Shown: positions 2,290 through 62,975 of the stretch, in pieces | How positions within the stretch are numbered: position 1 is the first letter of the stretch | How the letters are laid out: every line of letters starts with the position of its first letter | Assembly: GCA_011109175.1 (NCBI GenBank) | Contig: RDEW01000023.1 | Location: forward strand, 469,225-533,224 | Origin: Dicyema japonicum | Taxonomy: Eukaryota > Animalia > Dicyemida | Length of the DNA stretch: 64,000 nucleotides | Direction of reading: 5' to 3' | Program-made: the position numbers and the translations under genes | Notes under the pieces: generated by a model | Told to the model about the DNA's origin: nothing | The model's input: the letters and a program-made list of their open reading frames with translations, nothing else | The model's database searches: none

Positions 2290-2395
2290 TTGAGAAACGT
2301 TGAATTAGAAAATGCGCTCTCGGAGTTGTTTCAACAACCAGAATCTGACCTGCCTGAGAAGCCTGGCGAGCAGGCAAGCGAGGAAGGTTGTTAAA
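2290..2395 (+). mobile_element. 3' terminal fragment of the R4/Dong-like family seen at 31893-35299
   Basis: Encodes ALSELFQQPESDLPEKPGEQASEEGC*, matching the C-terminus ALSELFQQPESNLPEEAGEQAGEEGC of the long copy. Confidence 0.85.
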
Positions 2396-2777
2396 AATCA
2401 TTTAGTTAGTTATTAACCCAGACCTCACTACTTGTAGGAGGCCAACTGATATCAGGCGTCCAATAGCTAATGATAATGCTTCCACAGGTCTCTGATGTTC
2501 ACTGGAGGTCCTGGACAGGATAAAGCTTCTTTTAGAATCAATAATAATCGGTCCAGTAAAGAAACCAAGAGCCCGATTCGTCTTTTAGGAAGAAGTGTCT
2601 AGAACGTAATTGTGCTAGGGTCAAATAGTTACATTTTTGGTTGGTTAAATTTTAATTTAATTTATTAACTCCGGATACACCGAGAAGTTAAAGTAAATAA
2701 AGTGATCAAACTATAATTTAAATAATAATTATTTTAAATAATAAATAAATAATCCCGTTAGGAAGATCGTTCATTTG

Positions 2778-4065: not shown

Positions 4066-4215
4066 CAGTGGTTCTCAACCTTTTTGGTGTGCGTGCCAAA
4101 TCAATAATTAACAATTGGTTCGCTTAATTAGTTGTTTACTTTAACTTCTTTCTCGGAGTATCCGGGGTTAATAAATTAATTAAAAACAATTGGTTCGGGC
4201 GCCGAAAATTTTTTT
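4066..4215 (+). mobile_element. Partial hAT-type MITE (left end only)
   Basis: Starts CAGTGGTTCTCAACC, a typical hAT/Charlie TIR start. No right TIR seen. Confidence 0.45.
4123..4186 (+). mobile_element. 5'-truncated copy of the ~320-nt non-autonomous retroposon (SINE-X), with 12-bp TSD
   Basis: ACAATTGGTTCG flanks both sides. The interior matches the tail of 46497-46819. Confidence 0.8.
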
Positions 4216-13256: not shown

Positions 13257-15320
13257 CTATCGAGCCCTGGAACTATTAGCCTATATCTTCAATTTATCCA
13301 TTAACACAAATACAATCCCTGAAATATGGAAGAAGTCTCTAATCAGACCTATCAGAAAACCCAACAAACCAATAGATGAACCATCGCCTTATATCTATTC
13401 TAAGTCTTATTCTAAGTCCTGTCTCAAGGATCTTTGAAAGGCTTGTCTTTGAAAAAATACAAGACTCAATCTTAATACCTCCGACCCAGCACGGATTCCG
13501 GGATAACCATTCGTCCACAACACACCTTACAACCCTCACACGATTCATTGCGGTAGAATTTAACTTTTTCAAACCTCATCAGAGGACAGTACTTATATCC
13601 GTGGACATCACAAAAGCGTTCGACTTAGTCTCTAGGAAACTCCTAACAAAGAAAATATTTGAAACCAACATCCATCCGAACCTGAAACTTTGGCTTGTAA
13701 ACTTCCTAAATGGAAGACGAGCACAAGTACTATGCAACAACATCAAATCAAGATCTCGCTATTTCCCAAATGGAGTCCTTCAAGACTTTCTACTATTACT
13801 TCAACTCTTCAATCTCTACATAAACGACATGCCACAAATCTGTAATGAAAACTGTCTAATCCTCTCCTATGCTGACGATATCATTCTTGCCTCCAAGGAC
13901 AGAAGCATTTAATCAGCGACTCAGTCCGCTCAACAAATGCTTGAAAAGCTGGAACTATGGCTATCGAAGCGGAGACTCGACACATCAGCTGTTTTCCACT
14001 TACAAAAGACAGCTCTGTATCGAACCAAAAATCTTTATGAAGAACGAGGCTATTCCTATTAACAAAACACCGATATCTACAATCATACAAAAATTTTGAA
14101 CCGATGCCATGTCCAATGAGAAGAGCTGTTCAGGATTCTCGACCCGGCCGGACTCGTCCTCTCCTTTGTCGGTCTGGGATCACTTAGTTAGATGAGAACT
14201 TTTCTTTCTCTCTTTTGACCAAGTGATCCTGGGGGTAATAATAATAATGTTTGCATTATTAACTAAAATTCCATCAGACTCAAATTCGTTAAAAATTTGT
14301 TCAAAATTATTGAAATAATATTTGCTTCGAACCAGCTTTCCTAATAATACATAGTGATACTCAAATTCGGTGTATATCCTATATCTTTAGACAAATTACG
14401 ACCTGTTCGTTTTTTAACTGTAGCATCTTTAATGCTTATACGTAGAATAATATTATGTAAGAAATAAGAGAATATCACATAGACTATTGTACATCACAAT
14501 TAGTGTTTACCAACTATATACAGTCCGACCTCGATTTGGAACGGACCTCGGGGCTGGAACACCTCAGTTTTTGGACTTGTGTGGGGTCGAGATAGGAGCA
14601 TCGGGCCAAGATGAAGTGCCTAGAGCGTGCTGGGATCACGTGCTTAGTTAGTTTGTGTAAACGTGGTCTCTTGTGTGATTATTAATATGTGCACAGACCT
14701 CTCTCATATACATTTTCCAGTCTACTGTTGTCGTCAATACCAAGATAGCTTTTGACAATTCTTCTGGTCACAATCTTAGAGCTCCGCATAAAAATAAAAC
14801 GAATGCCATCAATATCCACTCGAGATTTCTATAACCATTGTACCTAAGATATTTAACCACGAATAATACCAGATCGTATCCTAATACTTGTCCTACATGT
14901 TCGAACAAGACCACTTTATGATCTAAACACCATAGAATCTCCTTTTTACATTATGATCTAAATACCATAGAATGTAGTTTTATTTATTTTATTTTAAAAC
15001 TAAGAATCACCGAAAAATCTTTATGAAGAACGAGGTATTTAACCGAAAAATGTAGTTTTATTTATTTTAAACTAATCGTTGTCGTCTAGTGATCTCGGCC
15101 TCCTTAACCATCCATCTTACCTTTGCTCGGTGTTTGTCCGAGATCCGACATACTTCCTATATGCACGAGTTACTTTTGGAAACTTTGAAGGTGTCAATAA
15201 TACTTCATAATTTCAATTTCAAGAAAAATCTAAAACGATTCATTTTTAAATTTACAGAAAATTTAAAAAGTTATGAAATTTAAAATTATTTAAAATAATT
15301 TGATTCACAATACGTGAACT

Positions 15321-25024: not shown

Positions 25025-26506
25025 TTAAATAAATGTTGGTCTTTTACTGTATCTTGCGACAGCGTTTTTTGGACGCTTTTCTATCTTCCTTCCTGCAATC
25101 ATCTCTTCATTATTCATGGTTAAATCTTTGAGGATCTTCTCTGTGACCTGCGGGTCCTTAAAGTCTGCCAAAGTTCCTTATGGAAACGGCGCCATATGAG
25201 ACATCTATTGCACGATTTCTGGCTTTGTTCATGATTTTAAGGTGCTTTTCGTTTTCTCTAAGGTACCAGGACGGCTCCTTAATTAGGGTAACGTGGTGCT
25301 GGAAACTACACTTGAAGATGAATTTGACAGTAAAGTAACTCATTCTGACACCAAGTTACTTTTGACCTCTACAGTAACTCCGGAGACAGTCACTCTTGAC
25401 ATTAGAATATGATGCCGTTTAAGGCAGCTATAAACTAACAACCTGGATTTTCCTCAACATTTTGAGGAAATCTACTCTGGCATGTTACCTGAAACGAGAT
25501 AACGATTATCGTTTTCCATGACAGCAAGATAATCGTGCTTTTGTCCGTCGTTTTAAGACTCTGAAAAATTATTTTCTTTATACTAGATAAGCGATATATT
25601 TTTTTGTATTATAATTTTTTTTCTTTTAATTAAATTATTTTATCTTAATATTTTTAAATCATCACGTTTCCTATATATTTTTTGTGTATTATTGTGTGTC
25701 GTGGTTTGTTAATCAAGTTATCAGTGATGATACGAGACCTGTGTTGATTTTTCTTGATAATGATTGCTCTCTGAGATAATTGATTAACAACTCTAAACCT
25801 GTGACTATCGTTTAGTAAAAATTATCAAAAATAGTAAAATTTTTCTGATTAGTATTGAAACATAACCAGTACAATGAATTTTGACAATTTGCAGTCTTGT
25901 GTTTACCTTTCGTTTTCATTCGCGGATATCTTTTTATCTGCGAAGAACTAAAGGAAAATCATTTGACCCTTATGACCCCGTTATTAAGAATTATCTAACG
26001 TAATGGAAATGACTCTTTCAGATTTTCTCAAAAATGACTTATCAAAAATATGAAATTTAAACTCAGTAGACCAAAAAAATAGTTAGCAAGAGTCCCCAGT
26101 AGGAGAGAAAGTTGATTGATCGGATCTACGATGAAGTAGTAAAAAGAAATAATAGTATTGTTCTAAGGGACGCGATGAATCTCAAATCTTCCTCTTGGGT
26201 TCTCCGCTAGTTTTTGTCACGTCATTTTAGTCGCCGCAATCATGAAAGATGTTACTGATTACTTTGAACTAACAAAAACTATTTTATTGAGATTTTATGA
26301 TTATCTGCAGGGCGATTATTTTGACTTTATAAATCGGAAATTTTGACCTAAAATTGACTTGATTGACCTTAAAATTTTAAAAGTTTGACCTCTTTTGACT
26401 TTATGATAAATTTATCTACAAAAAAATTTTAATATATAAAAAACTAATCAAAATCTTTATTAAAATACAGAATAATGTAATTCGAAACGTTGTCGAATTA
26501 CATTGT

Positions 26507-29262
26507 AGCGTGGCGTTATGTGGTCCACCAATTCAAAAAATTCAAAAGGATTTGGCAACGCCCAGAGGGCTTCTAATACCCTCCCGAAAAGGACCATTAG
26601 AAAGTCCAAACATTCCGGCGAAAACCCTCAGCCCACTGTGGTGAAAAGAAATTTACTGCTCTCCAACTAAACATCAACGGAATTAAAGGGAAGGTCAGGG
26701 AACTCCGTTCAATCCTGGCAAATCAGAAGATCGACGTGGCCATGATTCAAGAAACTAAACTCCGCATGCATGATTCCACTCCTTCATTCCCTAGATACGA
26801 GGCAATCAGGATGGACCGTAAAAGAGAAAAGGGGGTGGACTACCTACTCTATTCAAAAAGAACCTGAAATGCAGAGACATTACTTCGGAAGTCTTGTTGG
26901 AAATGACGAGGTTACTGAGGCAATTGGAATCTCGCTTGGGACAACGAAAGGAAGTATGTTCCTCGTGAATATCTACTTCCTCCTCCCGGCTCCTGCCCAA
27001 AGGACTATGTTATTCAAAACCTATCAAGATTGGCTATCTACGAGAAGATCATCATATGTGGAGATTTAAACGCAAAGCATCCCTTATGGTTGTCAACCCA
27101 ACAGGCCGACACGAGAGGGAAGCTATTGTTATTGAAATCGGACTCCCTAACGATGCTGAATGACCCAGCGAAAAATACAAGGACCCTACTCAGAGAGACG
27201 GATTAGTCTACCTCTCCCGACGTAACACTCTACTTCACATCACTTTCATCGAAAATTACCTGGTCATTCTTCTACGAAACAAGAAGCGATCATTACCCAA
27301 TTGTGATGAAGATCAAGAGAGAAGCCAAAGTGAGAACACCTACTAGTTATAATTACAAAGCTGCTAATTGGGAATTGTATCGCGCAATCTCGGAATGATA
27401 GACTGAAGAATTGTTACTTGGACAGCTTCAAATCGCTAGAAAAGCGATCAAATACTTTACTTGCACAATCCTAGAAGCAAGATTATTGGCTATTCCCAAA
27501 CACCGTCTAAATTCCTCTAATGATCGAGGGAAGTCGGCATTGATCAAAGAAAGAAATCACCTAAAAAATCTAATTGGATCACATTAAAAACGAAACTGCG
27601 GATCAGAGCTCTAAACAACGAAATAAAGGCCAGAGAGCTCAAAACCCAGAAATTGAGGTGGAATCGGATTCTTACAAAGGTAAATCGCAACCGTAGTACC
27701 GGAGAAGTGTGGAAAGCCATTCGAAATGTTGCAAAGGGCGAAGAAACTTCCCCGAGGATGACTATACTCAACGAGACGTTAACAATTTGATAAAATTCTA
27801 CACAGAAATTTCGTACAAGAAACACATCAAGTCGGAAGTGCTTCTCTTTTCACGCAGAAATCTGAAGAAGGATTCAAACCCAGTTTATTTCTCAGATGAA
27901 AACGTGAAGAATGCGCTGAGTTTTACAAGAACAACGTACTCTGCCGGTCCCGACAACATTCCAGTAGTGTTATTGAAGAACCTTAGAGATATGGGAGTTG
28001 GTTTTTTAACGTCGATTTTCAACTATTCAATTATTTGGAATGTAATACCATTGTTATGGAACCAAGCATACATCCGACCTATACTGAAACCAGGAAAACC
28101 TAAGAAAGATCCGGCATCATTTAGACCTGTGTCATTGTTATGTTCCGAATCGAACATTCTGGAGAGGCTTGTGCTTGTGAGAATCAATTCTTAAAAGGAT
28201 TTTCAACACGGATTCAAGAGCGATTCTACATCAACGTACTACAGTCATTAGAGATGGTTTTTCAAACAAACCAAGGCATTTGAAGACAGTCTTATGTTCC
28301 ATTGATATTAACAAGGCCTTTGATTCTATTTCGAGAAAAATATTATAAATGAAAATTTTCCAGTCCGAGATCCAGGGGAAGCTTAAACTTTGGATAACAA
28401 ATTTCTTAAGTGGACGAAGGTGACGTGTATGCCTCGGAGGACTGAAATCAGTCTCACGTCTTCTCCCAAACGGTGTCCCCCAAGGATCTCCTTTATCCCC
28501 TGCCTTATTCAATTTATACCTGGCAGACCTCCCGACACCGGAATCCAATAACGATGTTCTACTCACATATGCGGACGACATTGTTTTGGCCTCGCGTGAT
28601 CGGGATATCCAAAATGCTACAGAAAGATTACAAATTAACCTGGACCGACTCAACGCCTGGGTAATGAAGAACCGACTCACGATAAATTCCAGAAAGTCGG
28701 TCACGTCTATGTTTACTTCGGACAAAAGGTTGGGGAAGATGACTGTCAAGTTAAAATTGGACAACTTTGAAATCCCCTTCACCAAATGTCAGAAGATCCT
28801 GGGCGTGACACTGGATACACACCTATGTTTGTCACCACACGTGGCAAACATTGTTCTGAAGTGCGAGAAGAGGATCAATGTATTAAAATGTTTATCTGGA
28901 ATATGGAAGACAGGTACCCACCCGATTTTTATAAACATTTACAAACAATACATCGAACAATGCTTCTCATACGCGTGTGCTTCGTGGGAACCCTCATTAT
29001 CATGGACGAACATAAGAAAATCGAGGACGTTCAAAAGAAGGCTTTCAGAATGACGGAGCGGTGGTCTTGTGGGAGACACACTGAAGGCCCTCATTAAACA
29101 AAACTCCGGCATGCGGGAAGGTGGCCCTGCAAATACAGTCAGCCGCCCGGTACGAGCTTGTGTGGGTACGAGGGAGGAGCACCGGGAAAGGATGAGGATT
29201 TTGGCGGAGCACATCGGGATCACGTGATAGTTAGTTTTGGTTTTACCGTGGTTCCGGGTGTT
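26507..29262 (+). mobile_element. Near-full-length decayed Vingi-like LINE (short structured 5' leader, APE, RT, no RNase H seen)
   Basis: The 5' end AGCGTGGCGTTATGTGGTCC is shared with 39759. APE QLNINGIK...AMIQETKL starts ~150 nt downstream. RT QGSPLSP/YADD; 3' GGGATCAC tail. Clade assignment is inferred from architecture. Confidence 0.8.
26511..26597 (+). ncRNA. Candidate HDV-like ribozyme fold at the LINE 5' end
   Basis: P1 GGCGTT/AACGCC, P2 GTGGTCC/GGACCAT, P3 CCAA/TTGG, P4 GAGGG/CCCTC and J4/2 CCGAAAA, in HDV order. L3 is non-canonical (it contains a small duplication). Confidence 0.5.
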
Positions 29263-30460
29263 AAAAAAATTTTTATCGGGTTTAAAATTTCGGTCTTTAG
29301 ATAGTAATTTTCCCAATAAAGAAAAACTTCTGTCAACAGATAATGTGGAAGGACACTTTTTAAGATAGTTGTATACATATGGAGAAATATGTTGTTTTTC
29401 CATTTTGAAGTAGAAAGCACTTGATTTACAGATAATCTTGATTCTAGATACTTCCCGATTTCCACATAAATCGTCCGTAAATGCAATTTCTTAATGTCTT
29501 CAACAGGGTCTTTTATAGTGAAATAGGTTTCTACTGCCTTCTTTATCATTTCACATATATCGTCATATTGGCATAATATTGATGATATATTTGTATGTAG
29601 TTCGTTTTGACAAACTGCTTGCAAACATCTTTCGACTAAAATCCCCTCTCCAGTGAAACTTTCAATTATTTTTTTTATTTCTGTGTAATTTTTGCAATAA
29701 TAGCGGACTGCTTCCATCCAACTCCCCCATCTTGTTAGAATAACTTCAGGTGGATAACCCGATTTCAGCAATTTTTTTTCTTCGTGTCTTGTTTTTGACA
29801 GTTGCGGCCTTTATCGATGAAAATTAAAAAACCCGCATCCTTAAAATATCCTCCTATTTTAAGGCAACAGTTATGAAGAAGATGAAGAACACATGTTACA
29901 TGATGCAAATTCGTGTATAAAACCTTCAATACCTGTGTGGCAGCTACCATTTATCTGGCTACATCAGATACCAGTAATACAAAATTATCGCGATTTATTG
30001 CAAAATTCCTTAGCACATCGTCAATTATCTGACAGACAATCGACGAGTTAGCTGCAGAAGACAATGGACGACAAGATATTAAAAATATTTTCTTGGGATC
30101 AGAAATTCTACCAATAAGTGTATTGATATATTTCTGTCCCCGGATATCAGTTTCGTCAATCAAAACAAAAATTTTCAGATCTATAATAAATGCAAAAAAA
30201 CCTAAAAAATAGCTTAATTCCCTCAAGCTGTTTCTGGCATAAATTTTCTACACTTTTTCGGCAAGCGAAAGTAAAAGGAAGATTATGTCCAATACTCTCA
30301 AACAAGTCTCGTAAGCTTTTACTGTTAACTTATGCAAGGGAATATCGGATTCGACAAAAGCGTATAACTTCATCATTCTATCGAGTTCCTTTTTGCTGAA
30401 ATCAGGACTGTTTCTCTTTTCAGGGGTTTTTATATTGAGAGAGTCTTCCACATGAATGAC
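29262..30460 (-). mobile_element. Decayed hAT-like DDE transposase element
   Basis: LIDETDIRG, LLVSDVARY, HVTCVLHLLHNC, PPEVILTRWGSW, and a C-terminal DRSFSLLGKLLSKDRNF. Confidence 0.7.
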
Positions 30461-38390: not shown

Positions 38391-39758
38391 TGTATCATAA
38401 TTTATTCACCAAAAAAATATATTAAATATGGAAAAAATTTTTTTATAAAAATAAATTAAAATATAGAAAAAGTTTCTTTTTCGGCAAGTAAACTGAACTT
38501 TTGCATAATGGCCAACAACCGCCCCAGATACTAGAAGACTAAAAACCCGTTATGGGAAGCGGTTCAAAATCTCCGCCGATTTCGATGTTCTCCTTGTCAG
38601 TATGAGATCATTTGGTTACCTGAAGAAAGGCGACAATACAGAGATTTCTCGTTAAGATAGTTTAAGTATAAAATCGACGTCCCATTTTATGTATTGCTCC
38701 ATATTTTTATTTAATATCAACAGAAAAGAAACCATCCAAGCGATAATATTTTCACGTTTGATTTTGGTATCGTTAATCAAAGCTATATCGACATGTTCGA
38801 GTTACACAAAGTGGTGTCTCAAGTTGCTAAAACGACTGAATTAAATTTGCGAAAAAGTGAGACAAAGTCTGTCAAAGAAGAACATGGAAAGAAATGTCTC
38901 AACAAAGTCGATATCGCCAACATCCAATGTCTGAACCACAATAAAAGTTTGTTAACAAGAAGATTAAAAATAATGCTCGTTCCTTAAGGAAAAGGCATAA
39001 TGAACTTGCAATCATTTCGACTACCTCTAAGGAAGGTATCCTAGTAGTTAAAAAGATCACTAAGATTGATGTCACAAATGAAGGGTCACCATTAGGTGGA
39101 TATACAGGAACATCTATTCTTTTTGTTGCGCGGAAACATGGATTAATGGTGATGGACTCTACTCTAGGAACCTGGAGACATGTTCTACAGGGATTTTTCA
39201 GTTTTACAACAAGAATTCGTATTCAATTTTGGTGGGAAATCTCAATGAAAAATGTCAGCTGTTGATATAGTGTTAGATGAACCAACGTGGACGGCGTTTG
39301 GAGGTCTGAAACCTCTGGATTTGAAGTTCTAACGTCGGAAGATCCAACCATCATTCCTATATCGGTGGTGATAAACTATGAGTTTTTCTTGTTTTCTTCC
39401 ACTTCTCGCAAATTTGGATATGCCTAGAACCGTATGTAACGTATTGGAAGTGACCACTCAAAGATAAACGACCAGCGCAGTTCGTGTCGGCGAATATTCC
39501 TAAGTATCTATCTAATTTTAAAAGAAATTTCTAAACCGGGAGGGAATATTTTAAAACGGCCGGAATTGTCTCCAGTGCGATATCGCTTATCAGAGAGTTC
39601 TACAGGCTCATTTTTGAACCTAATTCTATTTAATATTTTTTATGCCGAGTTTCTCAAAACCATCAAATTTTAATTTTGAAAAATCTATGCAGACGGGATT
39701 ATTATGAAGGCGTCCTGGAAGTCAGTTCTATTAGAAAGAAGAATAAAATATTATAATT

Positions 39759-41350
39759 AGCGTGGCGTTATGTAGTCTACCAATTCAAAAGGATTGGAAA
39801 CGCCCAGGGGCACCTAATGCCCACCGAAAAAGGACCGATAAACCCCATCCTCATGGAGACATTCTCGTCCTCGGGCAATGCATTTTGCGTTAGATCGAAC
39901 CTTCCTGGAGGAAATCCTCTGCCCATCGAAGAGAAAAGCACTTTACGGCTCTCCAGCTAAACATAAATGAAAAAAAAAATCAGGGAACTCCGCTCACTCC
40001 TGCTTGTCAAAAGATTAAAATTGCGATGATTCAAGAGACCAAAGTCTCTTTAAATGACCCTACCCCTACATTCCCAGGATACAAAGCTATCAGGAAGGAC
40101 CGTAGAGAAAAAGAGGTGGAGTATGCTCACTCTATTCAAAAGAACTTGATTGCAGAGACATCTCGGAAGTGAGAAAATTGTTAGGATGATGATGTAACAG
40201 AAATAATTGGAATCTCACTCGGATCGACGGAAGAAGACTATGCCTTGTGAATATCTACGTTCCGCCTCCTGGTTCCTGCACGAAGAGCTATGTTACGCCA
40301 AACTTATCAAGACTGTCTTCTTTTGATGAGATCATCATCTGCGGGGATTTGAATACGAAGCATTTAATATGGCTGTCAACTCAACTAGCTGACATGAGAG
40401 GGAAACTATTATTATCGCAAACGACTCCCTAACGATATTGAATGATCCATCGAGAAATACAAGGACACCATTGAGAGAGACAGATAACCTACCTCACCGG
40501 ACGCACACTCTGCTCATCGTCGCTTTCATCAAAAATTGATTGTCAGTTCTCTGCGAAACAAGAAGCGACCACAATCCAATTGTGGTGAAATCAAAAGAGA
40601 GGCCAACGTGAGGAGAATTTCTAGCAGCCACAATTACAAATGTGCTAACTGGAATTGTATCGTGAAGCTCAGAAGATAAAATGAAAATTGTTACTTGGAT
40701 AGCATCAGTCTCTGAGATGCATCAGCTACTTTACCCAAATAATCTTGGAAGCAAGATCAAGGGCTATACCAAACATTACTTAAATTCGTCGAGTTGTCGA
40801 GGGAAGACGGCCTTGATTAAAGAAAGAAATCTGCTTAAAAAAATTAACCGGATAACCTTGGATATGAAACTCCGGATCAGAACATTGAATAATGAAATAA
40901 GGCCAAAGAGCTCTAGGCCCAGAGGTTTAAGTGGAATCGTGTGCTTACATTGTGAATAGAAATGCACTACGGAAGGTGTGGAAAGCTATTCGAAATGTGG
41001 CAAAAGGCGATGAAATTTCAACAGAGGAGGCTTATGTTCAGTGATGTGAACAACTTGATAAAATTCTATACTAAAATTTCACACAAGGACACATGAAGTC
41101 TGATACACTACCATCACGTAGAAAACTAAAGAGACTATAAGAACCACTCTTCTTTTTCCGAGAGAGAGGTGAGGGATACAATAAATTCCGTTAAAACAAC
41201 ATACTCCCACGGACCAGTACGTTTATACGCGGGCACGAAGGAAAAACAATGGGCAAAGATGAGGTCTCTGTTAGAATGCATCGGATCACGTGTTAATTAG
41301 TTTGGTTTTACCGTGATCTTTGGTTAAATAAATAAAATAAAATAAATAAC
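39759..41350 (+). mobile_element. Second Vingi-like LINE copy (5' end, APE, internal deletion, 3' end with TAAAA tail)
   Basis: Collinear with 26507-29262. It jumps from the HGP motif near 41210 to the 3' UTR. Confidence 0.8.
39763..39837 (+). ncRNA. Candidate HDV-like ribozyme fold, second LINE copy
   Basis: P1 GGCGTT/AACGCC, P3 CCAAT/ATTGG, P4 GGGCA/TGCCC (different sequence, same helix), CCGAAAAA, and P2' GGACC. The 5' strand of P2 is mutated. Confidence 0.45.
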
Positions 41351-45239: not shown

Positions 45240-47300
45240 TTTCACTAACTCACTATTATTTAATTATGCTAATAAGTCTTCTCTTAGAAGAGGAGTCGTT
45301 GACCTGAAACCTATCCGTTTCCTCCTCACCCGGGTTGCATGGAACGTCATCGAACTGGTTTGCTAATTCCACCAGGTGATCGGTTGCTGTAACCAAATCT
45401 TCCTCTATAGTGCGCACCTCATATTTATATACACCAACATCCTCTCTAACGTCATCTGACTCCAAGTGAGATTTATAAGCCTTCGAAAAACATCGATATG
45501 ACTTTGACTGGAGCACCATACATTAGTTTGAGCTCTTTAACCAATAAATCGTATTTATGGAACTTTTCTACTTCAATGTGCTTCAATAATTCCTTAAAAG
45601 TTATTCCAATTTCAATAAGTACAATTTAATTCTTTACCTTATTGTGGACGAAAATATCAGGTTTATTGAACCTTTCCTGAATATCTGTCTTTATGGATGT
45701 TTCCACCCGAATTTTAACCCTTGAGTATTGACCATGGAATTGACAGAATGAGTCTTCAGTCTCTTTAACTTTTTGATGACGTAATTATGCACAAGTGCAA
45801 ATGTATGAATCTAACCACTTCATCTTGCCTTCTAGCAAAAACAGATTCCTGTTTTGAAAAATACAATACAAAGCCTCGGATCTCGGACTATTTTTTACTG
45901 ACCAACTACTCAGCGGATCCAACAACATCAATATTTTTTATCTTCGAAACAATTATAAAGTATAGAGTAGAATGACTTACTCCTGATACTATCCATCTGG
46001 GATTTCTGTTGATAGTCCTTGATACTGTTAAGGCTTACTTGGGTGGGATCCATCTTGTACTTGAAAGCATGTTAGAAAAATTGATAAATAATCTTTCTTT
46101 GTTAGCAAGTTTAATTTACTTTATACTCTGTTGAAATACGGCAAATTTCAACATCAACAGACTCAAATTCCTTCGGTTCAATGTCAATTAAGCCAATGCA
46201 GTAATTATAGAGAGACAAGATATGGTCGTTGATTGTTTTAGATAGATTTGCAGCATTGATCTTCTTATGGACCATTTTCACGATCCTTTTTTTCATGTTT
46301 TTCGCGATCGTTCTCAAAACATCATGCTTCATGACGTTGCCAGCACAATCCTTTAAACTCCGAGGTAGCGATCCATCCAGAGATTTTAAATCCTTCATAT
46401 ATCCAGATTAGTTGCAGACTTCTCAAAACTCCTTCTAAGCTCAACCACATTGAAATACTCATCAATCTCATTCATCATCCTCACTATTGTATCTTCCCGC
46501 GTGGCACCATGTGGTGCTGCGTGGCTAATTGGTTGAAGTTTTCTCTTTGTTTGTCTGTTCCTCCTCTCTCTTCCTATTAGAGTGGCGTTATGTGATCCAC
46601 CTGTCTAGGTGTCGCCCAGTGCCTGGCTGGCACAAAAAAAGATCATTTGCTCTTCCCCACTCTACTGAAGGGGTTTCCACAACTGCAAGTATAAACGTCT
46701 TACGCTTTATGTGGATTCCAAATGGACTCTGTTTCTGTAGAAGTGGAAACTGGATACACTTAATTAGTTGTTTACTTTAACTTCTTTTTAGGTGTATTCG
46801 GGGTTAATAATTTAAATTAATTGTATCTTCATTCTCCGCAAATATTTTTAGATCATTTTTAATAAAAAGTAAGTGATTGTTTGTATCCGCCATCAACGAT
46901 GAATTACTTTGGGCTATAGACATTTTGGAAATTTACTATTTAGAATTTTGCTTACGGATCCATGAGTAGCACAAAGAGCTGCGAGATAATGAATCTCCTT
47001 GCAATATACAGCGGTTTAATTTAACCATTCCACTCATTTCATTGGATTATCAGGCTCTTCAAACTTTCCAATTGACATTGAGAGGCCAGAACAGTACAAT
47101 ACATGACAGAGAAGGCCATGGTCTACAGAGTCGTATGTCTTCTTTACATCAATCCAAGAAACGAATAGTTTGTTTTCATAATCACTGTTTATAAACTGGT
47201 TTATTAAAGCATGTTCCTTCGCCCCTTGACACATCCTCTTCGCTCCCAATTGATTGTCAGAAATAATCTCGAACACTTACAAATAATTGTTAAGTTTTGA
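45240..47300 (-). mobile_element. Decayed R4/Dong-like RT-RLE element (second subfamily), interrupted by SINE-X
   Basis: NQLGAKRMCQGAKEHALIN, WIDVKKTYDSVDH, LYNYCIGLIDIEPKEF and KPDIFVHNK. Confidence 0.75.
46497..46819 (+). mobile_element. Full-length ~320-nt non-autonomous retroposon (SINE-X) with an internal HDV-like fold and 11-bp TSD
   Basis: ATTGTATCTTC at 46486-46496 and 46820-46830. Homologous copies at 62652-62975, 54780-54890, 4123-4186 and ~2660-2700. Confidence 0.8.
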
Positions 47301-47394
47301 GGTGACACATTTAGTAACCAATTTATTCACTTTTTAATTTTTTTATTATTTAAATCGAAAAACTTTAACTTCCTAATTTTAACCCTAAAAACAA

Positions 47395-54095: not shown

Positions 54096-54779
54096 GTCAA
54101 TATAAGAGATTTATCTTGGGGGTTTGAGGATATAAGAAATTCTCTGAATGGACAAGCTGATTCAATCATTTTATATATTCAATCATTTTGTTAATTCAAA
54201 AATTGTGTTCCCAAAGGCTGATTCGTTGCCCAGAATTATACTTTCCAAGGTCTGAGTGATAATTGTTGAATAAAATCATATGTCCCCTCGCTTATATTCA
54301 ATGAGACTGTATATTCTGAAAAGATGACAGGGAATCATCCCAAGTGAAGACTATTGGGACAACCTTTATCTTTGCATGGTGTTATTCCCATTTCAACAAG
54401 AAATAAGACTTATATTTATCAGACACCAAAGACCAAGAGTAACCAAGCTAACTAACACCTTGATCCTGACTCGTTCCAGCATTCCAGAACTTTTTCTCCA
54501 GGTAACGACATTGTCCCCCTTGGAAGAATAGTTGGATCCTCTTGAAAGCCAGCCAGGCATTGGGCGTCTCCTCAGTAAGATGGATCCAATGACGTTATCG
54601 GAAGGAAGGAAAATAATTTATAACCAACTATCCACATAGCACCACATGGCGCCATGCGGCCAAATTATTATTATTAACCCAAAAACACCAATAGTTAATC
54701 TCTTAAAATTAAATAGGTGATCCCAACGATCCTGATGAGCTTTCTCAGCTTCTCCCGATGTTGGAATTAGCGTATTAAT

Positions 54780-54890
54780 TAAATTATTAACCCCGGATAC
54801 ACCGAAAAAGAAGTTAAAGTAAACAACTAATTAAGTGTACCCAGTTTCCACTTCTAAATTAGCCACGCAGCACCACACGGAGCGACGCGC
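54780..54890 (-). mobile_element. Internally deleted SINE-X copy (head joined to tail)
   Basis: Minus strand GTGTGGTGCTGCGTGGCTAATT joined to AGAAGTGGAAACTGG...GGGGTTAATAA. Confidence 0.7.
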
Positions 54891-62651: not shown

Positions 62652-62975
62652 CCAGGTATTTATTAACCCCGATACACCGAGAAAGAAGTTAAAGTAAACA
62701 ACTAATTAATTGTATCCAGTTTCCACTTCTACAGATAGAGACCATCCGGAATTAAGGGTAAAAGACGTCCAGACTTGCAGTTGTGGAAACCCCTCCAGTG
62801 GAGTGGGGGAGAGAAAATGATCCTTTTTCGTGACGGCCTGACATTGGACGCCACCTAGACAGGTGGATCACACGACTCCACTCTAATAGGAAGAGAAAGG
62901 AGGAACAGACGAACAAACAGAAACTTCAACCAATTAGCAACGAAACACCATATTGCGCCACGCGACTAACATCCA
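62652..62975 (-). mobile_element. Second full-length SINE-X copy
   Basis: Collinear with 46497-46819 from head to GGGGTTAATAA tail. Confidence 0.8.

Follow-up and report, generated by a model that had tools for sequence, protein, structure and literature searches.

What does a pseudoknot with the layout of a self-cleaving ribozyme do inside a short retroposon, where cutting would sever the element from its own 5′ end? The question is raised by a repeat in a 64,000-nucleotide stretch of the genome of Dicyema japonicum (GenBank assembly GCA_011109175.1, contig RDEW01000023.1, positions 469,225 to 533,224 of the forward strand), referred to here as the window and numbered from its first base. 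A first-pass annotation had described this repeat, SINE-X, as a nonautonomous retroposon with an internal ribozyme-like fold and a tail like that of long interspersed elements (LINEs), and had proposed that cleavage would remove its 5′ head. In our analysis, SINE-X is probably a composite, LINE-dependent nonautonomous retroposon in which the fold of the internal module stays uncut, either as a structural element or as an inherited relic.

The copy occupies positions 46498 to 46819 on the plus strand (322 bp) and is bounded by a perfect 11-bp direct repeat, ATTGTATCTTC, at positions 46487 to 46497 and 46820 to 46830. The two 11-mers are identical and represent the target site duplication (TSD) of the element, as had been annotated. 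SINE-X is inserted in an older, decayed minus-strand LINE of another type, whose reverse transcriptase (RT) pieces are found at positions 45476 to 45892 and 47094 to 47324. Since RT fragments of this host LINE lie on both sides, SINE-X is an insertion and not a piece of that LINE, and the view that the copy is not a fragment of a longer LINE is supported. From 5′ to 3′, the copy is composed of a head with homology to a LINE 5′ terminus (46498 to 46541), a pyrimidine-rich spacer delimited in the alignment of 32 copies (46542 to 46583), a 63-nt internal pseudoknot module with the helix order of the ribozyme from hepatitis delta virus (HDV) (46584 to 46646), a family-specific body for which no LINE or small-RNA match was found (46647 to 46749), a 3′ hairpin with an extended GGATACAC/GTGTATTC stem (46750 to 46801), and a terminal GGGGTTAATAA plus A/T microsatellite (46800 to 46819). 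The hairpin is recognized both from its homology to LINE tails and from its folding energy, with a minimum free energy (MFE) of −21.9 kcal/mol (z = −6.96) that none of 200 shuffled sequences reached. Sites resembling GGGGTTAATAA occur 8 times in the window (1.3 expected), and the repeats at the very end differ among copies, being either (TAAA)n or ATTAA.

SINE-X is an abundant family. A search of the 67.5-Mb, 377-contig assembly with the 322-bp query returned 1834 first-look candidates (40 scored; ~90% identity, full-length), and 32 aligned copies yielded a 315-nt consensus with sharp ends, running from (G)CCGCGTGG... to ...GGGGTTAATAA and followed by variable (TAAA)n/ATTAA. The copy at 46498 to 46819 is ~90% identical to this consensus. 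An 18-mer from the body had 956 genome matches and a 25-mer across the spacer/module junction had 703 (≤1 mismatch in both cases), compared to 0 for either reversed control; at ~10% divergence, these probe counts suggest roughly 2,000-2,600 copies. TSDs of at least 7 bp flank 24 of 31 family copies (median, 13 bp). SINE-X therefore has the traits of a short interspersed element (SINE), being short, noncoding, dispersed, TSD flanked, and equipped with a LINE-type 3′ end. Its annotation as a nonautonomous retroposon stands, and it is an independent TSD-flanked family rather than a fragment of a longer known LINE.

Both ends of SINE-X resemble those of LINEs in the window. The 14/17 match between the head (46500 to 46516) and a LINE 5′ end (26509 to 26525) noted in the first pass was reproduced, and the family consensus matches at 15/17. 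The head holds the leader GCGT and the 5′ strands only of the first two module helices (P1 and P2). A second LINE-like start, also noted earlier, lies at 46582 to 46601 and matches LINE positions 26511 to 26530 at 19/20 (18 to 19 of 20 overall). The LINE concerned, LINE1 (26502 to 29269, plus strand), is a compact element with APE and RT domains; its 5′ end carries the same module and its 3′ end is of the same hairpin-and-tail type. Two other copies measure ~2.86 kb end to end, and all LINE1 copies seen are broken into open reading frame (ORF) pieces. Its only Pfam domains are Exo_endo_phos and RVT_1, with nothing in the last 208 amino acids and no RNase H. Vingi elements are compact, single-ORF LINEs of ~3 kb with APE and RT and without RNase H (PMC13708176), and by domain content and size the putative partner LINE fits a Vingi-like element; an atlas search returned generic RVT_1 clusters only. 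The LINE 3′ ends at 14170 to 14241 and 29215 to 29269, as well as those of seven further LINE1 copies, share the hairpin-then-tail design of SINE-X, in agreement with the annotated resemblance of its hairpin and GGGGTTAATAA to LINE 3′ ends. The tail hairpins of LINE1 and of another element, LINE-C, are homologous to that of SINE-X, with stem sequences that are different yet complementary (GGGATCACG/CGTGGTCTT, then GGGTGTTAAATAAA); the SINE-X 3′ end belongs to the same hairpin-plus-GGGKTTAA class while being only ~60-65% identical. In stringent-type LINE/SINE pairs such as UnaL2/UnaSINE1, recognition proceeds via a 3′ stem-loop and a short repeat tail. SINE-X resembles this pair in that a short-repeat tail comes after a conserved 3′ hairpin, a design of a class common to SINE and LINE, but differs in that its tail is only ~60-65% like that of LINE1.

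The annotated helices are all present in the module. In the 46498 to 46819 copy, P1 pairs 46584 to 46589 with 46611 to 46616, P2 pairs 46592 to 46597 with 46641 to 46646, P3 pairs 46599 to 46602 with 46607 to 46610, and P4 pairs 46619 to 46623 with 46629 to 46633, with the joining segment J4/2 at 46634 to 46640. The strand order, P1-P2-P3-P3′-P1′-P4-P4′-P2′, is that of the nested pseudoknot of HDV-like ribozymes. P1 of this copy consists of 4 bp plus one mismatch and one wobble, compared to 6 to 7 clean base pairs in the family consensus (P1, GGCGTC/GACGCC; P2, GTGATCC/GGATCAT; P3, ACCT/AGGT; P4, GTGCC/GGCAC); private changes weaken both P1 and P2 here, and position 46589, for example, is T in this copy and C in nearly all related contigs. 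These related contigs, from four runs of unstated kind, have a huge depth over SINE-X, and in run X4 (a second sample) contig depth over the first half of the module (46572 to 46602) exceeds that over the remaining SINE 7- to 20-fold, an excess that fits a module common to several repeat families.

One such family is represented by the 5′ part of a SINE at 54530 to 54660 (minus strand), here called family B, which has a head nearly the same as that of SINE-X (54617 to 54660), a short spacer, and its own version of the module; the SINE-X body is not shared with it. The fold was evaluated on 13 SINE modules from three families, with the 3′ partners slid by 1 to 3 columns as a control. Standard pairs filled 83% of the pair cells, versus 33 to 45% with slid partners, and both the covariation score (0.205 versus 0.128 shuffled) and the number of doubly changed cells (17) exceeded 500 of 500 shuffles. 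Double changes separate SINE-X from family B in P2 (G-U to U-A at positions 13-69; U-A to G-C at 14-68) and in P4 (G-C to A-U at 41-55), so that the helices do covary. The first pass was correct in reporting that P2 differs from that of the LINE by a G-C to A-T change; in the LINE-to-SINE comparison, P1 shows C-G to T-A and P2 shows A-T to G-C, P3 is also changed, and P4 is of unrelated sequence yet still a 5-bp hairpin. A covariance model built from the SINE modules alone, without P1, found 11 LINE 5′ ends at full length (E values of 1e-4 to 0.07). Taken together, the pairing, the covariation, and the recovery of LINE 5′ ends by a SINE-only model indicate that selection has acted on the pseudoknot as an RNA structure, at any rate in the source LINEs. 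Nested MFE calculations gave the module weak z-scores (−0.4 to −1.6), which is no surprise in a pseudoknot, and these scores were excluded as evidence. Two variants of the fold were rejected. Pairing of the P1 and P2 5′ strands of the head with the 3′ strands of the module showed no covariation, since SINE-X and family B have one and the same head but differ in their P2 3′ strands, and P1 could not be extended into the conserved upstream bases, which have no complementarity.

Does this fold cut? If cleaved RNAs served as templates, genomic copies would be expected to begin at G1, the base at the predicted cut site (consensus position 88; window position 46584). Breaks were counted genome-wide as a 22-mer starting at G1 and preceded by three nonconsensus bases. 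For SINE-X there were 6 breaks versus 703 intact junctions, most of the 6 being intact copies with small indels, and the same test at an arbitrary control position gave 11; for LINE1 there were 0 breaks versus 46 intact junctions. In neither SINE-X nor LINE1 is the predicted cut site the point at which genomic copies begin. The bases directly 5′ of G1 are conserved (TAGCGT in the LINE; GCCGCGT in the SINE head), LINE copies retain 6 to 10 nt upstream of the site, and the spacer is retained in essentially all 32 aligned SINE-X copies despite its position 5′ of the predicted cut.

The annotated idea of a working ribozyme whose cleavage removes the head, and might thereby release the real template or a small RNA, is at odds with these counts, since no enrichment of copies starting at G1 is seen in either SINE-X or LINE1, and we consider it improbable. 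It draws on the HDV helix order with its compensatory changes, on a G1-pyrimidine pair, a U at −1, and a CGAA-like string at J4/2, and on the proven HDV-like ribozymes of the related Ingi/L1Tc clade and of the nonautonomous NARTc (PMC3185411, PMC4035085). In the HDV descriptor, G1 pairs with a pyrimidine and U is the preferred base at −1 (PMC6326823; PMC1874588), and SINE-X, family B, LINE1, and LINE2 (a second LINE whose 5′ end with the module lies at 39757 to 39841, plus strand) all have the G1-C pair and T at −1. The descriptor of Yamagami et al. further includes a 3-bp P3, an L3 with U...CG, and two C-G P1.1 pairs with J1/4 (PMC6326823), and both the L3 U...CG and the two P1.1 C-G pairs are absent from the SINE-X, family B, and LINE modules. 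L3 instead reads GTCT or TGTCTA in SINE-X and TACTG in family B, while the LINEs have an AAAA loop on a closed 7-bp P3. J1/4 is CA throughout; a 2-bp UG/CA P1.1 is possible in SINE-X only and shows no covariation. P3 of SINE-X can close to a 5-bp hairpin, so that P3 is a closed hairpin of 5 to 7 bp in SINE-X and the LINEs alike, and the closed P3 of the LINEs deprives an HDV-type active site of a free L3. At 26530 to 26556 and 39782 to 39800, this LINE hairpin is CCAATTC/GGATTGG around AAAA, and in LINE1 the P3 loop also has a 9-nt internal duplication (AAAAAATTC).

The CGAA-like string does not provide a free cytosine in SINE-X. Its C55 pairs with G41, in a pair that covaries to A-U in family B, leaving a purine-only J4/2 (GAAAAA) where HDV-type ribozymes have a free catalytic C opening a CRRA segment; a C-to-G change at this position abolishes HDV-type cleavage (PMC6326823). 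Rfam HDV-like families gave no match at gathering score on the window and none at E ≤ 10 on the SINE-X copy, a consensus-like copy, or the LINE1 5′ end, a negative of limited weight as these models are specific to sequence families and ignore pseudoknots. The Rfam matches at E ≤ 10 were noise only (UCA1, snoR97, greA, and FsrA). Kojima has already remarked that a SINE-internal ribozyme would truncate its SINE (PMC5786205). Judged from its purine-only J4/2 and noncanonical L3 and P1.1, the SINE-X module is probably catalytically disabled, and its action as a self-cleaving ribozyme appears unlikely.

Copies of SINE-X extend slightly beyond the conserved head. Of 18 copies whose TSD is clear, 17 have 5 to 22 additional bases separating the upstream TSD from the conserved GCCGCG. 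Among 133 exact heads listed genome-wide, one and the same leader can be found at several unrelated loci (...TGTGATGTTA and ...ATTATCTCAC are examples), and SINE-X subfamilies differ in the ~10-14 nt before GCCGCG (for example, TTCTGTGATGTTA and ATTATCTCAC), as seen at loci L051 to L058 and among the listed heads. Eight copies at different loci have the leader (TTC)TGTGATGTTA and diagnostic substitutions elsewhere in common, and differ in sequence further upstream; in one of these eight (L056), the leader lies inside the TSD. Since the leaders recur together with subfamily substitutions, they are inherited, and inherited leaders indicate that the template RNA begins at least 10 to 14 nt upstream of the conserved head. 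These leaders are a new point of the present analysis, and such an upstream start is what would be expected of an internal start-site element. LINE1 subfamilies also vary upstream of TAGCGT, with ATTG, AATT, or CGGATCT. Separately, several LINE1 5′ ends (L032, ~2357-2400, minus strand; L036; L038) are directly preceded by the (TAAA)n or GGGGTTATTAAATAAA tail of another element, a sign that tails already present may have been the site of insertion or the target of template switching. [quoted passage not shown]

Inherited leaders would also suit a head and module that act mainly as DNA, as an internal RNA polymerase III (Pol III) promoter with A- and B-box-like elements or as a Pol II promoter, with an incidental RNA fold. 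The head contains A-box-like strings (TGGCGCCATGTGG and TGGTTAATTGG), the start lies upstream of the conserved head as with internal promoters, and mollusc LP-SINEs with LINE-derived heads have been proposed to use LINE promoters (PMC4758252). However, a function at the DNA level leaves the paired compensatory changes of four helices unexplained, and the Pol III form of the idea encounters further difficulties. The head showed no B-box and no similarity to tRNA, 5S, 7SL, or snRNA genes (ARAGORN on the copy; Rfam at E ≤ 10), so that the strict definition of a SINE by a Pol III-derived head does not apply and homology to a LINE 5′ end takes its place. A run of four T residues at consensus positions 42 to 45 (window region 46538 to 46542), ~45 nt into the element, becomes T5 in one subfamily and T3 in another; as a would-be terminator, a T4-T5 run would stop Pol III and argues against its use. 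We regard a mainly DNA-level role of head plus module as very improbable. For the head taken separately, a LINE-type Pol II promoter appears more likely, by analogy with the mollusc LP-SINEs (PMC4758252).

If the module does not cut, it may still be used, or it may simply have been carried along. Several observations weigh against a composite element that depends on Vingi-like LINEs and keeps an uncut module. No partner LINE whose tail is identical emerged from a genome pattern of SINE tail plus non-SINE upstream sequence; the same tail pattern gave 7 matches, 2 of which had non-SINE sequence upstream (C201:167197 and C290:211929). LINE1 (CCGAAAA) and family B (CAAGA) have a free C in J4/2 and, given their G1-pyrimidine pair and U at −1, their modules could be ribozymes that act slowly or conditionally. 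The L1Tc ribozyme is active despite a P1.1 of one base pair and C at +1 (PMC3185411), so that an odd core is no proof of inactivity. The compensatory changes lie between families whose modules were possibly captured from different LINEs and demonstrate selection on the fold somewhere, not necessarily within the SINE lineage. A compensatory P4 pair within the SINE (GTGAC/GTCAC at L041:532-602) occurs in a single copy and is uninformative on selection; otherwise, only U-A/U-G alternation was seen within SINE-X.

The last two observations are also what would be expected if the module were a neutral passenger, that is, a relic of a nonautonomous LINE made of 5′ and 3′ ends, with a fold shaped before capture and without a role in the SINE. 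Published SINE middles derived from RTE and Vingi 5′ regions have been explained in the same way (PMC5786205). Nevertheless, besides the tail class, the head and module are the only parts common to SINE-X and family B, whose bodies differ, and the module is full-length and internal in at least three SINE families. In addition, 1 of ~12 subfamily-diagnostic changes falls within the module, with pairing retained (not significant). With these data, we view a module devoid of any SINE function as rather unlikely. [quoted passage not shown] In its most specific form, which we advance only tentatively, the HDV-shaped pseudoknot would be an exapted, catalytically silenced domain that Vingi-like LINE proteins need at the 5′ side of the template, and SINE families would keep it as a conserved central domain.

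For the uncut composite element that we favor, the following course of events can be proposed. The head (~45 nt) would have been copied from the extreme 5′ end of a compact APE- and RT-bearing, Vingi-like LINE and would most likely act as a DNA-level internal promoter or start-site element, with the RNA starting at least 10 to 14 nt upstream of the conserved head. After the pyrimidine-rich spacer, the full copy of the LINE 5′ pseudoknot would leave the retrotransposed RNA uncut; it may be retained for its RNA structure, plausibly as a handle at the 5′ side by which the LINE protein or ribonucleoprotein (RNP) engages the RNA, or be a relic of a bipartite LINE ancestor. The 3′ hairpin, GGGGTTAATAA, and the A/T repeat would be recognized by the LINE RT for target-primed reverse transcription (TPRT), presumably that of a compact APE-RT LINE acting in trans through the hairpin. 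TPRT from the 3′ tail would account for TSDs of ~13 bp, for the occasional 5′-truncated copy, and for additional bases at the 5′ junction.

Among the closest known counterparts to SINE-X are the partners of Ingi-group LINEs, and the first-pass analogy to RIME/NARTc is apt. HDV-like ribozymes are established at the 5′ ends of R2, RTE, L1Tc/Ingi, and other LINEs, and NARTc and R2 SIDEs carry them terminally (PMC3185411, PMC4035085, PMC3414825). NARTc and RIME are bipartite nonautonomous partners of L1Tc and ingi with the Pr77 promoter and the L1TcRz HDV-like ribozyme (PMC3185411, PMC3383444, PMC4035085). Like SINE-X, they are short, nonautonomous elements built from LINE 5′ and 3′ ends, with a 5′ piece that folds in the HDV helix order and doubles as a presumed internal promoter, and their partner is an Ingi-group LINE. 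In contrast, the L1Tc/NARTc ribozyme lies at the very 5′ end and cuts at +1, the first base of the element (PMC3185411), whereas SINE-X has a partial module in its head, the full module ~87 nt inside, conserved bases before the cut site, and no cleavage footprint. The R2 SIDEs, internally deleted R2 elements, are likewise nonautonomous and retain the LINE 5′ HDV-type fold and the 3′ RT-binding region, but R2 ribozymes are proven, terminal, and needed for RNA release from the rRNA cotranscript, and R2 insertion is site specific (PMC3414825).

With respect to architecture, SINE-X resembles SINE2-1_ACar, SINE2-1B_ACar, and SINE2-1_AMi, in which the 5′-terminal ~70 nt of Vingi form the SINE middle and are followed by a LINE-type tail (Kojima 2018, PMC5786205). 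Those SINEs have tRNA-derived heads, whereas the SINE-X head is LINE derived. No RNA fold or covariation has been described for the Vingi piece in SINE middles, and Vingi is outside the six listed ribozyme-bearing clades (PMC5786205). Gastropod and bivalve LP-SINEs (Matetovici et al. 2016, PMC4758252), like SINE-X, begin with sequence whose homology is to the start of a LINE 5′ UTR and not to a Pol III gene; they differ in having a Nimb-type LINE source, with no second internal copy of the LINE 5′ end and no pseudoknot reported (PMC4758252). As in LP-SINEs and bipartite elements, the 5′ end of SINE-X is homologous to that of an autonomous LINE (15/17 for the consensus, plus the internal module). 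The annotation of SINE-X as undescribed is thus only partly right, as the combination of a SINE middle from the Vingi 5′ end and a LINE tail has been published (PMC5786205); four diagnostic 18-mers had no occurrence in the paper texts searched. What differs from known elements is the LINE-derived head, the complete and structurally supported internal HDV-shaped module, and the genomic evidence against its use in cutting.

Beyond the copy described above, the window contains a second full-length SINE-X at 62660 to 62964 (minus strand), which is 84% identical to the first, has an imperfect TSD (AATACTTGGAT/AATACCTGGAT), and carries 7 extra 5′ bases. This copy includes the annotated 62816 to 62885 segment with GTGATCC/GGATCAT followed by ...CACGAAAAA. 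The first-pass count of at least five copies was generous: two are full-length, and the rest are one internally deleted copy in which the head is joined directly to the tail (54779 to 54889, minus strand), one 62-bp truncated copy, and one tail fragment (2653 to 2700). The 62-bp insertion (~4121 to 4184, plus strand) lies near 4110 to 4197, consists of the SINE/LINE tail hairpin only, and is flanked by a 13-bp TSD (AACAATTGGTTCG); on its structure, it is best described as a textbook 5′-truncated TPRT product. Between the deleted SINE-X and the family B head, positions 54661 to 54778 (minus strand) hold a hairpin and TGGGTTAATAATAATAA tail of a further LINE/SINE type, so that three elements are stacked head to tail at 54530 to 54889. 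At least five LINE remnants form a mosaic across the wider window.

Why many SINE superfamilies retain a conserved middle domain is a long-standing question. Some of these domains have been traced to RTE and Vingi 5′ regions, with no structure offered (Kojima 2018, PMC5786205). In SINE-X, a LINE-derived middle is a pseudoknot with between-family compensation and the HDV layout, placed where cutting would be self-destructive and without a trace of cutting in more than 700 junctions. This leads to the testable proposal that the fold serves the element and catalysis does not, with the LINE RNP, for example, using the fold as a 5′ handle; the proposal is of relevance to engineered Vingi gene-writing donors, which likewise carry a 5′ UTR. 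The findings also caution that an HDV-shaped fold in a retrotransposon is not automatically a ribozyme. Should the silenced-domain proposal be true, the SINE central domain would gain a defined structure and function, and a ribozyme fold would have been reused as a protein handle.

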